Of a DNA stretch of 64,000 bases, positions 3,001 to 61,000 are shown piece after piece. Under the pieces are notes generated by a model. The model saw only the letters and a list, made by a program, of their open reading frames with translations, was not told the DNA's origin and searched no databases. Position numbers and translations under genes: made by a program. The DNA lies in the NCBI GenBank assembly GCA_038496445.1, contig JALMLS010000466.1, positions 434,001 to 498,000 on the forward strand, written 5' to 3'. The first letter of the stretch is position 1. Each line of letters begins with the position of its first letter. The DNA is from Trichosphaerium sp. ATCC 40318. Its lineage: Eukaryota; Protista; Tubulinea.

Positions 3001-3590
3001 GATACCGCAAATAATTGGATTGATCTACATTATGCTTAAAATGCGTAATCCGTTGTTGTTTATTTACCTACGTGCGTTGCAACACCTACACCCTTTTCCT
3101 ATTTTTTTCCTTTTTCAAAAGGTAAACGTTTTGCTGAACGTTAACTCTATTGTAGTTGTATTTGATGTTTTACTTGTTAATTTAAGTGATTTGATAAGAA
3201 TTTACTTTAAAAGTAGCACGCACTCACATATTACCAAGAGGTACAATGGTGCCTTTAAACAAATGAATCCTAATAGCTTTTAGCATACCACTCCTACAGC
3301 AATTTCTACCAATCATCAGAAACGGCCTGCTTCAAACCTTTGCTGGCTTTTCAGTGTGCGTCAACCACCGCGAAACCGTGGCAATACTGTGCTCATTACT
3401 TTGTAATAGATCCTTTATAATCGCTGGTTGGTTTCATTTTGTACGCCTTCGAATTGATAGAAAAAAAACTTGTTTTAACCTCACTTTCTACTAGAGAGAA
3501 GTAAAACAGTCATCATGGATACTTATGCTTGGATACTTTTTTGCAGTATTAGTCACGCAAATACTACTCATAGTATTTGATAGGAAATGA
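1..3590 (+). CDS. Highly divergent P-type ATPase (type IIC Na/K-like) with degenerate catalytic motifs; 5' end lies outside the window
   Basis: Spliced exons give LVPGDIVRISIGDYIPADVR, EGTATG-VVVNTGKNT, APEML (PEGL), VKSVQAIEHLANVTAICIDRCSLIQ (aligns to [20 protein letters not shown]), TAKAIAERCGI, HDEIIFTK and VAIFGDGTGDYSSILQADIGIA. The 3' end is approximate. Confidence 0.8.
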
Positions 3591-3654
3591 AAGAAACATT
3601 CAACAAACAAAAAACTGTTTAAACATTCATGTTTTTATTCAACACGTAGTCAAT

Positions 3655-5326
3655 TTAATTACCATCTCCTTGACCCCAATAAAACTTTCTTTCCATAATC
3701 TTATTAATAAATCCTTGTTGGAAAGACTGGTTTTCTGTTTCTTTCAACTCGTTATAAAAAGCCAATCCCTTATTATAACCACGTGTACCAGCGTCATCAA
3801 ACCTAACATGAAAAAAAAAAGTCAATACTGCTCTTACATCGTATTCTAAAGCATACGTGTGATAAACCAATTCATCAATACCAGCATATTCTGCAGCGGC
3901 TAGTTGTAGCGCAGCCATCAACTCCCTGTCACCTCCAAAAGCACCTATTTAAACAGTTACAAGAAGCAAAATATACAAGGCATGCAGAATGTGCACTCCA
4001 GCTTAGTCTTAACTCCTACATACCTGTTCCCCAATTACCAGTGTGTACTATGACGTTTGGAGATTCTATGGACTTCTCTTTTGCTATCTATACAGCGAAA
4101 TATAAGGTACTGTTTCACACTATTGACTAACCCTAAGTGATTCGTGCTTTGCAGCAAAAAAAGAAGTGTATGCAGTTGTAAACATATCAACAACTTGCTC
4201 TAGTTTGTATGGACCTCTACCATTTCCAAGAGCAGCCATACATATCAGATTGGTAGTAGTTGGTGGATTGATCACCTCAGTTGCACGTCTTATTGCATCA
4301 CGACTACAAAACGATCAATAAGAACTCTTTAACAGCAACTTTTAAAAAATTATGATTGTACCTTGCCGTTTGGAATTGGTTACCGTACAGACCAAAAGGC
4401 CTTCCTCTATTAGGGTTTCTATCAGTAGCGACCTAGTATGTATAAGATTAGATTGTAGAACAGTAAAAAACCCTCGGATATGTACCTTGCAACGACGTTC
4501 AATGCCAGCAATAAGAATAGGTGTTGGAAAGAATTGATCTCTTGTCAAAGGCTTTAAATTGGGATTCTCGGCCGAGTTCGACTTCAAGTACTCTACAATA
4601 AACGTCTAAGAGTGATTGACTAACGTGACCTGATAGCATACCTTTAAGGTGACCCAAGGAAGGATGTTCTACAAAAAACAAAAAATGTAAGAAAACAGCG
4701 AAATTCACTTCAGTGAAAGCGTGCCTGCTACTTGCATTTCGTCTTGAGCGAATAATGGTCCTCCGTGAGCCACGAATAGATGTGTATCTGCAAAGTTAAC
4801 ATACCTTTTGGAGTAAATAATAATTCTGAACTCAACGTGGCACTTACCATTCAATGTCGTTTTTATTTTCACTTTCTGTATAAGAAAAAACGTCTTGTTG
4901 GCTCTTTAGAGTACATTTCTGGTTTGGCGGAAATCTTTTCAGAAAACGGTAAGTGGTTGTAATCTATGCCTTCTATGTATTACATAGAGGTTAATTACGC
5001 ACTTATTAACAACAGGGATGGCTTTCCAGCGTGTAAACTGTAAATGGCCTGAAATTCGGTTAACACAGTTTTCATTGTTTTTATTTAGTACCTTTGTGTT
5101 CTGTGCCAGTGGGACATGCTATATCGTACACTAATTTTTTGAGTGGATTGTTAATGAGCGTGTTAAACGCTTCTACCATGCTACTAGTTTTAATTTTTAC
5201 GCTGGCAGAGCAGAAGGGAGATATATCCTGTGGGTGCCTGCGTACAAGCTAGTTAGTTTGTAGTACTTTTTGACACGTTTACGTGTCTGTAGTGAGGAGT
5301 TTCTGGTGACTCTCAGCGTTACCCAT
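3655..5326 (-). CDS. PARG-like (poly(ADP-ribose) glycohydrolase macrodomain) protein of a bacterial-type family
   Basis: Spliced product MGNAES...VYDIACP...WYVNFADTHLFVAHGGPLFAQDEMQVAEHP...PTPILIAGIERRC...VHTGNWGTGAFGGDRELMAALQLAAA...WGQGDGN. VNFA, GG-x4-QDE and TGNWGxGAFGG correspond to PARG motifs. Confidence 0.75.
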
Positions 5327-5848
5327 AGTTCCTGTTGTAAAAACAAATAACAGCAACAGTAACTTGACCAAACAGCTTAAGTAGCCTAAACTCATTGTAA
5401 ATTCCTACTGTAAACAAGAAGTAGCAACTTGACAGGCTTAAGGTATTATGCTTAATGCAGGTTATGCGGCTATACAGATATACAACAAGTCACTTTTAGA
5501 TTTTCACAATAATAACTGTACATGATATCCTTTATTGCGTACTTTGCCTTGGATAAGTGAGCTTGCTAAGACCAATGCATAACGAAGACAACTATTGGGA
5601 GCCTACAAGAGCAACGCAATAATATTTCCATTTAGCTTACAACGAAAACAGTGAATCCGAGTGTAGGCAAAATATGTACAGGAGCTTGGTACTTTAAGAA
5701 TACAACTGTTGTGTCACTAGCAAAAGCTACAGTTTTGCATCAAGGCACGTGCCGTGAGGGTACCTTAGAGTTCACATAACTATTTTAAGCAAACTATCAT
5801 TGTAACCCCGTACCTTTAATCAACACTTACGCTGAACTAGTTCCTACC

Positions 5849-6144
5849 ATGACAGAACCAAATGCCGCCACGAAAGACGTGCCTAAAGAAACTCCACCCA
5901 AGCAGACAGAAAAAGCTGATAAGCCTGCTGCAAAAGGCAGTACGTACCCCGCCTTACTTGAATAAACCTTTCTTACGTTCAATTTTGTGTAAAGCATGTG
6001 ACGTATGAAAAACTGCTTGTTAGAACTCACGCACGTGTAGGAACGAAGAAAATGAGGCAAAAACCTGAAATACAAAATCTCATACTACCTGTAACATTGG
6101 ATGATACAGATGGCTTTAATTGTCCTGCTTGTGGCATGGGATAA
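5849..6144 (+). CDS. 64-aa K/P/T-rich peptide ending CPACGMG (ChrA-like MNIO RiPP precursor motif)
   Basis: Exon 1 5849-5939, intron 5940-6040 (GTACGT...CTCAC...GTGTAG), exon 2 6041-6144. Product: MTEPNAATKDVPKETPPKQTEKADKPAAKGRTKKMRQKPEIQNLILPVTLDDTDGFNCPACGMG*. Additional upstream exons are possible. Confidence 0.75.
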
Positions 6145-6812
6145 CAAAAAACAAGGCAACGTTTGCTCAAGAATTCTGCACTCAAGTTGGTGTAGACCAG
6201 CAAAAAAAATGACAAATCGAGTACTAATAAAAAAAAGTTTTTTAATTATAAGTCTTGAATATTTAGTGTGATTATTTATGTACATTGCATGAACATTGGT
6301 TTGGCCAGACTTGGAGTTAATGTTTTTAGTACTACCACTAAAATACCTTGCTCTCAAAAAGAGATAGAGAGTTAACAAGTATTAAAATTAGTAGTACTTT
6401 GAAAATCCCTCGAAGCTAGAGGTGCAATGTTCGGATTATATAAATAACTGTCTGGCCAATTTTAGATTTTGGTTTTTGCCTTTTCTTCTTTTTTTTTTCT
6501 TTTTTTTTTTTTTATCCTTTTTTACAGCCGGTTTCATCTTAATCTCGAAAAAAAACTGTACAGTCGGGAACAAGATGAGTTGTCAAAAAAAACGGTGAGT
6601 CGTGAGAGAGGTAGAGAAACATTCGTGACACAAAAAAAGAGATGATATAGCCCATATGATATAGCCCATATGTTCGTGCGTTTGGTTTTTTTTTCGGTGG
6701 TTGTTTCTCCGTCTTTTTGGTGGATCCTGCTTTTTTCAATAATTGGAGAATTTCGTTTTTCTTTTTTTTTTTTTTCAGTTTGTTTTGATTTTCTTCTTTT
6801 TTTTTTTTTGTT

Positions 6813-16916: not shown

Positions 16917-18757
16917 TCATTTTGGCTTAGATTCAGTAACTGTCTCTTTGTTTTCTGGGGTCTTCAAGAATGCTTGATTACCCTTAATATGGCGATTATG
17001 GAAGCGAAATTGCTTTGCTGATCGCGTGCCAAACTGTATTGCTCTTTTAGCTGCTTCAGAGGCAAACTTCAAACCGAGGTTGGTAGCAAGTGTGCGAAGT
17101 ATTTTCTTATCACCAACTCCTATTGGCTCATTTAGATCGCATATCTCGTACAATTGCTTTGAGCGTAGAAACGCCATAACTCTCTCGTCCAAGAAAACCA
17201 ATCTGCTCTCTACAAAAATCAGTCCATGCATCACACCACACAATTTACAACGTACCTTTACCGTTACTGGATATAACGCGATCATCACGGCCCATGTTGC
17301 GTGTCCATATTCTACCAACATCTATATCCAATTCAGCCCCTAATCCAGGCCATCCACCGTTGTTAAACGATGAGCGATGTCTACCATAACCAGCAAGTTG
17401 TTCATCTGCTCCAGAACCCAAAAGTAATACTCGAGCCTTTGACGAATACGGTTTCTCCTCTGTATACTCAATACCAACACCTCTGGCAGATAACCATATA
17501 GCTACAGCTATAGTTACATCCATCACTGTATCAGAAGGCGCCATAGCCTCTGTGACAGTTGGAATGAAAGTCTCCATCTCTGTATTAGAAACATTGACGA
17601 GAACAAGTCTAAACCTATCTTTACCAAACCTTTCTACCAAGTCTTTATAAGATGCAATAGCATTCTTCCTATCAGGTACAGCATTGAAATCTGCACCAGG
17701 TTTTGCAAAAGCAACATTCAACAAGTCAATTGTATGTGTAGGTAATACTTCTCCTGCTAAAGCAGCTACAACTGCAGAGTCAAGTCCACCAGAGAATAGA
17801 ACAGCAACATCGTCTTTTTTAGTATCCTGTACTCTTGCTGTAACAGCCACCTTCATTACGTCATATAGCTCTGTTGACAGTTTCTCCCAGTCTATTTTAA
17901 TACCTTCTGGTGGACCTTGTATTCCACCTCTTGGATCCTTTGTAGGGACATCAAATGGATAATGTTTTGTAACTATGCTATCTGTATCCAAGGAAACTTT
18001 AAACAATCCCGTTGAAATCTCCTTCCAAGCTATAGTAAAACAGTAAGCGATGGGCTTGGTATTTTTAGTGTACATCTTGTTAGTGTATTTTCCACAATGT
18101 CTCCTTGTGGTACGATAGATGAAATGATCAATAAATCAGGTGTCTCATGAATGAGCAAAGAACGTCGTCCAAGAGTATCCCTACCGAACCAACAACTCTT
18201 GGAATCAGGTTGAACTAGTGCCATTGCCCAAGGACCTAGAATACCATTGAATGTGTTGACAAGATCTTGATCATTTCTATCTCCAAGTGTTTTAGCTAGA
18301 TGAATACCATCATTTTCACCTGAAGGCACCTTACAATGTCCGTAAATTTTAAAGGTTTTTTTTGGCTTTTTTCACTCACGTGGATGTTTCCTCCAAATAT
18401 TTCACCGTTCCATGCTAGTAGACCACTTTTTCCAGTATCTAGCGGTTGTATGGTAATACCTGAATACGTTTTGAGGGTGTGTTAATGAAATAATTGTGTA
18501 CCTTCTCCTCTGAGGCCTATTATTGCGTTAATTGGTATTTTTCGCGTAACGACGTACCTAGAACACTTGCAACTAAGGTTACTTCCCAACCATTTATAAC
18601 AACGGTCTTCACTTTGATGCTATCAGGTCCTATACGCGTTGAATACTATCTACAAAGAATATTGTTTTATACCTCGACGGGACAACGGTTCTTTCCATTT
18701 TTCAACATCTGGTGGCTTTGTACCTGCTCTACAAATAATAAGGGTAATTCCGCACAT
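16917..18757 (-). CDS. ASNSD1: Asparagine synthetase domain-containing protein 1
   Basis: MCGI N-terminus, RRGPD, WNGEIF, FGRDTLGRRSLL, LFSGGLDS, IDLLNVAF, LGSGADEQLAGYGRH, RNMGRDDR. Confidence 0.92.
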
Positions 18758-58094: not shown

Positions 58095-61000
58095 TTAGTT
58101 CTTTACTTCAAATCTGCTAATCATTCCTCGTACACCTGCTGGAGACTTTTGTGCTTTGCCGGATTGCAAACGAGCTAGTTTTTTCTCTCTCTTCTTTGCT
58201 TCTTCAACTTGATTATTTTCAGCTACCTCTACTTTGGTATCTACTTGCACCTCGACTTCAACTTCAACTTCAACAGCGGGTTTTGGTGCTTCCTTGGCTT
58301 CTTCCTCTTCCTCTTCCTTTGCTTTCTTGGCTGCTTCTTTAGCTTCTGCTCTAGCTGACTTGGCTGCTGCCTTGGCTTCAGCCTTAGCTTCTGCTTCTTG
58401 TCTGGCAGCTTCCTGGGCCTCGGCTTCTTTTCTAGCTGCTTCTTTAGCTTCTGCTCTGGCTGATTTGGCTGCTGCCTTGGCTTCAACCTTAGCATCTGCC
58501 TCTTTCTTGGCTGCTTCTTTGGCATCGGCTTCAGCTTTAGCCTCAGCTTCTAGTCTGGCAGCTTCCTGGGCCTCAGCTTCAGCTTGCTTTTGTCGTCGTA
58601 GCTTACGCAGTCTCTTCTTTTCCTTCCTATCTAGCTCCTTTTGTTCAGCATCACCTGTTTCACCATTGGATGTAACCTCAGCACCGAAATGAATGTCACC
58701 TTCCATGGCACCAACTTCAATTTTAAGTTCTTTTTCTTGCTCTTTTGGAGCTTCTTCCTCATTAGTTTCTTCAACTTCTTGCTTCTCAGGCTCTTCTTCA
58801 TGTTCTTCAGCGCTGGTAGCTTCTTTTTCTTCTTTTTTCTCTTTACTTTCATCTGCAGCGGATGCTGATTTTTTGTCACTATGTGACTTGTCATCAGCTA
58901 CAGGCTCTTCGTAAACAGCTTTAGACTGTTCACGTTTGAACCACAAGCGACCTATGCCACCTTGCCAAGCTTGAATGAGGTCGGCTAGAAGGACGAAATG
59001 TAAGTACAAACAAACATACAGGAGAGCTTCGTACTCTTTAATTCTGTCCGCATCTTCTTAATTGGCTTTAAGTCTACAATATCCATGTCTTTAACAAGAC
59101 AATTGATGCAATTTTGCCTGAAAAAACCCAGTTAAAATGTAAATTCTAATACATTGTATTTTGCGTACTTTAGATTTTTGTTGTACTTCAAGCACTCAAG
59201 GTATGTAGTATCCAAAATGTATAGTGCTGTTTGTGGTCTTACATTAGTTTCAAGAATCTCTGTAAGTGTTGAAAGGAGCTCTGGGATGTTAAAGCTCTCT
59301 ACAAAATCCACTAGATTACAAGCACATAATACAGGAATCTAAAAAATACGTTATAAATCACTCCTTATGGATTTTTCTTAAACGTACGTCAGTGTTTCTG
59401 AAGTAAATCCACCGTAACAATGCATCAAATGATGTTTTATCGACGCATTTGTAACGCTTATCTAGTACACAAACCTCACCTTCCTTTAGAGCAGCGAATA
59501 ATGTCTTGAACTCTTGTGAAGCCCTATACATTTTATATGAGCACAGTAAAAGGTTAAACAGATAACAGGCAATACGTACTCTACCAAAACTGCTTTGTGA
59601 CATGGTACAACGTCTCCCTTGAGCTTGAATTTGATGTCACCTGTTTTCTAAACGATTTATAAGCGATGAAAGAGAGTTGTAGAGGTAAACTTACAGGTGT
59701 GCTTTCATAGAGAGTCTTAAAGTCTTGATGAATGGTAAATTTATCAATAAGCTTTGGTTTTGGTAGAATTACAGTCTCCTCTAAAGAGCAACAACCTATT
59801 AGAATTGACACGAATAAATTTGTACTGTTACCTCCTCTAACGATTAATACAGCTTCCTGAAATAGATCCAAGCCTAAACGAGCGACCTGCTTGCTCTGTA
59901 AGAACTCTGTATTATGATCTACAGCGAATTGGAAGCAAACATCTTTTGCTGGTGTGATCTGCAATTAATGGTGAGTGTGAGTCACGGAATGAGCAAAAAA
60001 TACTAGATTCCGTACTTTCATATCACCAGAAGTGCGAAGAACTCTGTAAACATTATCGAGAGTCAATTTAGTAGATAACCATTGTTGTGCGAGTTCTAGT
60101 AAGCGTTTCATTTCGTAAGTGTGAGCGAGGTAAATCACTGACACAGCTAACATCTCTGTCAATGCATCGTAATCCAAACAACCACTAGTTTTGTACTTGT
60201 TAATAAATAGACCTCTAGATAGCAATTATTTAAATTGTTTATGTACCTGTAAATATAGTGCAATACACGTTCCAAAGCTACAGGTATAAGAGGAGGAACA
60301 TCTTCTAGCTCAAGCGTTGTGATATCTTTTTTAACTTTTCTTGTTTTCACGATTTTGGTGAACATGTTAGGACAACGAACTCTAATCACATACGAGTGTG
60401 CAGGTATAGGTGTACCCTACAGTATTACTTAACAACATCAAACAGACAAGATAGTTGCCAACGTATTAACACGTGCCTTTACTAAGAATATAACGTCTGT
60501 GAATGTGCTTGCACCTGTGGCAATCATATCTACATGATTAACCTCAAGACTAGTACGAACTGAACGCTTTGCGATAGTACCAACACGCATTGTACGATAT
60601 TTCTTGGTTGCTTTTTTCTTGCCTTTTTTACCAGGTGCGGCTGACTCGAAGCTGTATTCGTCTGCAAGAAAAACAATGTTAAAACAAGCTTGTTTTAAGC
60701 GGTAATAAAAAGAAATGTCTCGCAATATTTTTTTTCCTTATTTTCCTTGTTTAGAAATATTATCAATTTTTGTACCTTCGTATCCTGAGTTAAACGATTT
60801 TGTGCGTTTTTTAAGTGTTTTGTCTTGTTTAGAGACATTAGAGAGCCTGTGTGCGAATAAGGGAACATAAAAAGTTGCTGTTATGCGTTGTACGTCTTTT
60901 TCTTGCCACGAGCACTCTTTGGGTAAGACTTTCTTCCCGAATCTAGAGAAAATTAGCGTGTTGAAGTGTTAGATGCTGGTAAATCACCTTCTGAACTGTT

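Follow-up and report, generated by a model that had tools for sequence, protein, structure and literature searches.

A candidate two-exon gene for a CPACGMG-terminated peptide in Trichosphaerium, and ChrH-type MNIOs in other amoebae

The 64-kb stretch of Trichosphaerium sp. DNA analyzed in the current study (hereafter, the window) is ordinary eukaryotic DNA with a GC content of 38.6%, and contains spliced genes whose products have P-type ATPase, La, Ndc1, Asn-synthase-domain, SH2, UbiA-like, and F-box parts. The peptide locus considered here lies in a gap of approximately 3 kb, with the P-type ATPase gene (+ strand) on one side and the 3' end of the La-domain gene (- strand) on the other. Upstream of the candidate peptide gene, about 2.5 kb (3300-5800) lack a convincing ORF on both strands, which is unusually empty for a gene-dense window, and a T-rich tract with about three copies of TTTTCTTCTTTTTT-like units (6481-6523) is found between the candidate gene and the 3' end of the La-domain gene. 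Elsewhere in the window, an E/K/A-rich and internally repeated (AEAKEAARKEAEA... units) open frame of 304 codons (58095-59009, - strand) has no Pfam match and looks like a coiled-coil or low-complexity exon. We found no paralogue of the peptide within the 64-kb window, and neither Rfam families nor tandem repeats at the peptide locus. As SH2, F-box, La, and Ndc1 genes and other spliced genes surround the locus, the eukaryotic setting proposed in the initial annotation is borne out. An origin from bacterial DNA or contamination was rejected based on the spliced eukaryotic flanks, a local GC content equal to that of the window, and a DNA likeness to bacterial loci that is confined to the motif.

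The spliced translation is a peptide of 64 aa, rich in K, P, T, E, and A and ending in DGFNCPACGMG, in which a polar K/P/T/E/A-rich part is followed by a short LILPVTL patch and then by DDTDGFNCPACGMG (Table 1). By direct reading of the letters, the reading frame resumes in phase across the 5939/6041 junction, and the initiating ATG is the first one 3' of an in-frame stop (5786-5788). Direct reading and translation thus agree with the initial annotation of a GTACGT..AG intron and of a K/P/T/E-rich peptide of this length ending in NCPACGMG-stop. The two-exon ORF had also been described as missing from the ORF track, and this is the case, since a listing made without splicing contains only two pieces of the gene (5849..5965 and 5998..6144). 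Exon 2 includes an internal ATG (6052), from which unspliced RNA would yield a 30-aa product with the same C-terminal end.

Table 1. Coordinates of the candidate peptide gene and associated features in the window
Feature	Position	Strand	Description
Exon 1	5849..5939	+	ATG-initiated, 30 codons and 1 base; MTEPNAATKDVPKETPPKQTEKADKPAAKG and the first base of Arg31
Putative intron, phase 1, 101 nt	5940..6040	+	GTACGT...TGTAG; 3' end reads CTCACGCACGTGTAG (CACGTGTAG)
Exon 2	6041..6144	+	Rest of Arg31, then TKKMRQKPEIQNLILPVTLDDTDGFNCPACGMG; stop TAA at 6142-6144
Core motif CPACGMG at the extreme C-terminus	6121..6141	+	Putative recognition/modification site of a ChrH/DybH-type MNIO
AATAAA	6226..6231	+	Possible polyadenylation signal, 82 nt 3' of the stop, judged from the letters only

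The putative intron is in keeping with the splice sites preferred in this genome. On both strands of the window, GTACGT is present at 70 sites where 27 are expected, and it is the top donor (23/70) among the ORF-supported candidate introns, a set in which the shortest member has 40 nt and which is noisy at its long end. Some of these candidates are of similar size (83-112 nt), and several end in TGTAG or TTTAG. The clearest candidate introns in the window measure just 40-100 nt and have TTTAG or TGTAG ends. The Asn-synthase-domain gene at 17255 has an intron with the same donor type as the peptide gene, in which AAAG is followed by GTACGT...TTTTGTAG.

One alternative is that the locus is untranscribed intergenic DNA that happens to spell CPACGMG and a stop, with the two-exon model being an artefact of looking for one. 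A comparable model, with an exon starting at an ATG, a strong donor, and an acceptor in phase, can be built at only 49 of 2,028 ORF ends of the window (2.4%, with real genes included in the count), a share that leaves some room for a chance fit. The in-phase donor found here is of the type preferred by the genome. The motif itself was found only once, i.e., the CPACGMG of the 64-aa peptide is the single occurrence of CPxCGxG, CPACG, or CxxCGMG in a six-frame scan of the 64-kb window. Computed from the trinucleotide make-up of the window, the chance expectation of CPACGMG-stop is 2.2e-7 per window, 3.4e-4 per genome of 100 Mb, and 0.055 over 250,000 windows, so that one chance match among all those windows would not be absurd, while in a given genome it would be. 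The match, besides, falls in an amoeba, a group that has intact ChrH-type enzymes (see below).

The composition of the peptide is also coding-like, and in the correct frame only. Judged by log-odds of codon frequencies derived from exons of the window, the spliced coding sequence ranks within the highest 1% when compared with 387 null ORFs of 50-90 codons, and its other two frames score far lower. The choice between synonymous codons is uninformative in this genome, and the codon score thus reflects a protein-like composition. Further points compatible with a chance ORF are the location in a 3-kb stretch without another clear gene, a leader without positional likeness to the bacterial ones, and the sequencing records. 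Several sequencing runs contain approximately 0.38 of the words of positions 4800-6800, and none of the listed runs with this stretch is recorded as RNA. Considering the evidence on both sides, we regard a chance ORF as unlikely, though more probable than the other alternatives discussed below.

In bacteria, the ending is well known. CPACGMG is the core of the precursors ChrA, DybA, and MelA1 (PMC10214503, PMC12636315). In 115 clusters of Chryseobacterium, the ChrA precursor terminates in this motif, from which ChrH (DUF692, now MNIO) makes a macrocycle, an imidazolidinedione, and a thiomethyl group (PMC10214503). What the initial annotation had stated about ChrA and ChrH is confirmed by these reports (PMC10214503, PMC12452194); in later work, ChrI has been found to be dispensable (PMC12636315, PMC13056109). 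The more general CPxCGxG is found throughout the ChrH subfamily, in Bacteroidota, Cyanobacteria/Melainabacteria, Myxococcota, and Planctomycetota (PMC12636315, PMC13056109). The product of DybH is unmethylated, with a mass shift of -4 Da (PMC12636315, PMC13056109), and the seven-residue tag alone is sufficient for this enzyme, since GFP-CPACGMG was recognized and modified (PMC12636315). The carriers range from lipoproteins of 50 aa up to a TPR protein of >30 kDa, and the large cyanobacterial-type carrier has been reported to be secreted (PMC12636315). The biological function of the macrocycle/hydantoin derived from CPACGMG is unknown to date (PMC12636315, PMC13056109), and its ring has been compared by the PNAS authors with the B ring by which lantibiotics bind lipid II.

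As a control, bacterial and archaeal genomes were scanned at the DNA level for CPACGMG-stop, which gave at least 120 loci, each with a range of 8 kb. A ChrH-type MNIO was present within 8 kb at about 100 of the 120 bacterial loci listed (105 BLAST rows, with one ChrH as query against all ORFs of the listed loci, a few loci giving more than one row, and a Pfam check added). The presence of a ChrH-like ORF near most of the listed loci indicates that the ending is a near-diagnostic marker of the pathway. A scan of metagenomes for FNCPACGMG-stop retrieved 10 contigs, all with bacterial precursors of the lipoprotein or signal type.

In the peptide of the window, NCPACGMG is directly followed by TAA, and CPxCGxG is thus located at the extreme C-terminus, as in ChrA/DybA-type precursors. 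Among 18,950 NCBIfam families, the top two matches of the 64-aa peptide are the ChrA-type precursor models (E 0.0016 and 0.054), both with scores below the cut-off, i.e., 19.0 bits for NF050124 (cut-off 50) and 14.2 bits for NF050125 (cut-off 40), compared to 124, 71, and 66 bits for bacterial controls on the precursor models. We attribute this shortfall to the missing signal region and to a leader that matches in composition only. In HMMs made from the bacterial peptides, the score of the real leader does not exceed those of 500 shuffled versions with the seven C-terminal residues left in place, and homology of the leader to bacterial precursors was consequently rejected. The initial description of a ChrA-like, K/P/T-rich peptide thus stands for size, composition, and the CPACGMG end, but not in the sense of a homologous leader. 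Given that recognition depends only on the tag (PMC12636315), a non-homologous leader is to be expected.

Searches for relatives of the peptide gave little. Its exact 64-aa, 47-aa, and 38-aa forms are not in the protein collections, which is weak evidence, as ORFs of 64 aa are rarely annotated and annotation or ORF-prediction pipelines seldom retain them. The ESM Atlas returned nothing with exon 2 as query. A word-based protein search found no relative of the peptide either, and this result is void, since it also missed bacterial precursors of the same collection that share four 5-residue words with the query.

The N-terminus (MTEPNAATKD...) is polar and lacks both a hydrophobic signal sequence and a lipobox, in line with the earlier statement that no signal peptide follows ATG 5849. 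Among the matches listed, every short bacterial precursor opens with a signal of the Sec or lipoprotein type and continues into a linker rich in K, P, T, and E, and the amoeba peptide is without such a signal. It had been suggested that intron-like segments of 30 nt (5760-5789) and 39 nt (5802-5840) could extend the N-terminus. This suggestion had to be abandoned, as there is no upstream exon that could be joined and both segments are below the length of the shortest candidate intron (40 nt); an upstream signal-peptide exon was rejected as well, since within 600 nt no ATG exon with a GT[AG]NGT donor fits the frame. With a polar N-terminus and no joinable upstream exon, the product, if the gene is real, starts in the cytosol, the compartment in which an MNIO lacking a signal peptide, such as the amoebal enzymes described below, would encounter the 64-aa peptide.

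No MNIO or ChrI homologue was detected in the 64-kb window by tblastn with 1,450 ORFs from the bacterial loci (E 1e-3), which corroborates the earlier remark that the window holds no DUF692 enzyme. Clustering of precursor and enzyme is not required in eukaryotes. MNIO (DUF692) peptide chemistry is treated as bacterial in the literature consulted, both for the superfamily and for the ChrH subfamily, as the papers on these groups name bacterial members only (PMC12452194, PMC13056109). A survey of approximately 14,000 MNIOs mentions no eukaryote (PMC12452194), reports of fungal 'DUF692' proteins represent bacterial contamination according to their own authors (PMC8070225), and none of the papers that we found mentions a eukaryotic ChrH-type enzyme.

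Intact ChrH-type MNIOs, as judged by their sequences, nevertheless exist in amoebae. With a profile built from 16 ChrH-family proteins, we retrieved 278 proteins (E <=1e-30) out of 1.84 billion representatives, and the cluster names were examined for ten of these that were AT-rich or outlying. One of them, P0218, is KAL6074639.1, a 443-aa 'DUF692 domain-containing protein [Balamuthia mandrillaris]' (GCA_031835245.2, contig JAVKOQ020000023.1; L121:10001-11735). Its gene has five exons and four GT-AG introns (75, 155, 77, and 96 nt), and the splicing model reproduces the protein exactly. The neighbors code for a dual-specificity phosphatase (PTP/DSPc), a universal stress protein (Usp), an LRR protein, and a desaturase-cytochrome b5 fusion. 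The location among eukaryotic genes and the four introns indicate an integrated eukaryotic gene and not contamination. The protein bears two eukaryote-style inserts, acidic/lysine-rich in composition. The Balamuthia locus has a GC content of 47% and no excess of GTACGT, compared to 38.6% GC in the window, and thus belongs to a genome other than that of the window.

The best non-self match of P0218 is P0219, a Trinity transcript from EukProt. Both are sisters in the trees (SH-like support of 99 in a FastTree of 144 rows; SH-aLRT of 92 in an IQ-TREE of 40 rows) and fall among enzymes of planctomycetes, myxobacteria, and cyanobacteria, not with the ChrH/DybH of Bacteroidota. Their profile score against the 16-sequence ChrH alignment is 334 bits, and both belong to the ChrH/DybH subfamily of MNIOs (PF05114). 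Both keep 48 of 48 invariant columns, including H64, H101, D178, H209, D228, and H230 (L001 numbering), which occupy the positions of the published iron ligands, and have the fused C-terminal helical (KKW) domain. In DybH, the ligands of the three irons in the PF05114 TIM barrel are H65/H102, D179/H210, and D228/H230 (PMC13733907). No CPxCGxG was found within 10 kb of the Balamuthia KAL6074639.1 gene.

Some other proteins of the search deserve mention. Two AT-rich Logan candidates, P0204 and P0207, were rejected as eukaryotic MNIOs, as they are part of bacterial operons with their own precursor. They represent very AT-rich, divergent bacterial ChrH-type MNIOs (P0207 and P0204; Logan contigs, L122:1-159 and L123:1951-2145), each with a small ORF directly upstream, and one of the two is followed by a 2OG-Fe(II) oxygenase gene, a cluster make-up that is not among the described ones that we found. 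P0179, P0193, P0234, and P0242 are ChrH-type MNIOs of approximately 700 aa fused to a second domain, high in GC and presumably bacterial; the Pfam families of P0193 are alcohol-dehydrogenase/zinc-binding ones.

The amoebal enzymes bear on two further alternatives. The precursor could be a relic that arrived with an MNIO operon and, though its reading frame is intact, has ceased to be expressed or to be modified. The lack of an MNIO linked to the precursor within the window and the absence of the signal peptide seen in the short bacterial precursors (among the matches listed) are compatible with this possibility. An old unselected copy that had gained an intron should not, however, keep 7 of 7 core residues, a direct stop, the ATG, and two open exons, and all catalytic residues are kept in the amoebal enzymes, implying a continued need for a substrate. 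We thus consider a relic very unlikely.

The locus could also encode a real small protein with an unmodified CxxC tail, metal- or redox-active, that resembles the core by convergence. In many proteins, a CxxC end serves to bind metals; a cytosolic product is probable here, as there is no signal peptide, and a metal-binding peptide was named as an alternative in the initial annotation. Convergence in seven residues and in the C-terminal position is, on the other hand, far less likely than descent, because the cognate enzyme family is present in amoebae, and this explanation appears to us the least probable of those considered here.

Overall, the locus is probably a real substrate gene of a horizontally acquired ChrH/DybH-type MNIO pathway. 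This reading builds on the exact seven-residue core with its stop, which is single in the window and expected at only 3.4e-4 per 100 Mb; on the sufficiency of the tag for DybH, the near-diagnostic value of the ending in bacteria, and the ChrH-type MNIOs of amoebae; and on the ATG, the GTACGT donor, the in-phase acceptor, the coding-like make-up, the AATAAA, and the best NCBIfam matches. Against it stand the lack of a signal peptide or lipobox, the NCBIfam scores below cut-off, a leader equal to its shuffles, the lack of an MNIO in the window and of CPxCGxG near the Balamuthia MNIO, the absence of the peptide from protein collections (a weak point), and the 0.055 chance matches per 250,000 windows.

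The idea of a domesticated eukaryotic MNIO-type system, already raised in the initial annotation, has gained weight, because intact ChrH-type MNIOs that are spliced or transcribed occur in two other eukaryotic data sets (Balamuthia and EukProt). The locus may belong to a eukaryotic RiPP system of the CPACGMG type, which would be the first in a eukaryote. More specifically, an amoebal lineage that includes this organism, Balamuthia mandrillaris, and the source of P0219 may have domesticated a complete ChrH/DybH-type pathway, in separate intron-bearing genes and with loss of the export signal, a scenario for which we see the chances as evenly balanced.

Based on these observations, we propose a theoretical scheme for this pathway. 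An amoebal lineage would have taken up a ChrH-type enzyme and its substrate from bacteria, after which the precursor and enzyme genes would have become unlinked and gained introns, as expected of an old transfer. We infer that the gene is expressed and spliced, that an enzyme is encoded in the same genome, that the core is modified, and that the product has a biological role. The locus would encode a cytosolic substrate peptide of 64 aa (30 aa if unspliced), in which the disordered K/P/T/E-rich part would act as carrier or spacer and not as a recognized leader. The putative enzyme, encoded elsewhere in the genome, would recognize the C-terminal CPACGMG only. It would oxidize the second Cys, followed by formation of a Cys-to-Cys macrocycle, and the Gly-Met-Gly backbone would be rearranged to a hydantoin (imidazolidinedione). 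The product would be either a thiohemiaminal at -4 Da (DybH type) or S-methylated at +10 Da (ChrH type). With the export signal lost, the hydantoin-macrocycle would form on a cytosolic eukaryotic peptide. We speculate that the product could serve as a tag that binds cell-wall precursors or is otherwise antibacterial, and the likeness to the lantibiotic B ring, with its binding of lipid II, would suit a bacterivore.

If this reading is true, eukaryotes would have their first example of an MNIO-dependent RiPP and of chryseobasin-type chemistry, and this RiPP class would span more than one domain of life. The reading would also mean that a precursor-enzyme pair can survive horizontal transfer whole and then be taken apart in the genome. 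A bacterivorous amoeba would offer a second, very different cell type for the function of the product, with a cytosolic carrier instead of a secreted or lipidated one. Moreover, eukaryotic annotation would be shown to miss such substrates, because they are two-exon ORFs of 64 aa.

Among known eukaryotic systems, the fungal borosins, dikaritins, and amatoxins, the plant cyclotides, and the cone-snail peptides share with the proposed one a ribosomal peptide and a dedicated maturing enzyme, and to our knowledge none of them uses an MNIO. The best NCBIfam match of the amoeba peptide is ChrA (NF050124), the chryseobasin precursor of Chryseobacterium, which it resembles in size (64 vs. approximately 70 aa), in its K/P/T-rich disordered middle, and in the CPACGMG end. 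Unlike ChrA, it has no Sec signal peptide, scores 19 bits against a cut-off of 50, contains a putative intron, and comes from a eukaryotic host, without a ChrH-type enzyme adjoining its gene within the window; the amoebal enzymes, in turn, branch elsewhere than the ChrH of Bacteroidota. The lipidated precursors of the DybA type (DAG-RiPPs; NF050125) end in CPACGMG, often as NCPACGMG or FNCPACGMG, as does the amoeba peptide, which differs from them in lacking a lipobox cysteine or signal peptide and in reaching 14 bits against a cut-off of 40. DybH itself needs the 7-residue tag only (PMC12636315). In the MelA1/MelH/MelHc system of Melainabacteria and Cyanobacteria, the carrier is large, secreted, and folded, whereas the amoeba peptide is small, and MelH/MelHc have the C-terminal enzyme domain on a polypeptide of its own, while it is fused in the amoebal enzymes. 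This system shows that the tag works on an unrelated carrier, i.e., a TPR protein of >30 kDa, and the amoebal MNIOs are found in the non-Bacteroidota half of the tree, together with cyanobacterial, planctomycete, and myxobacterial enzymes.
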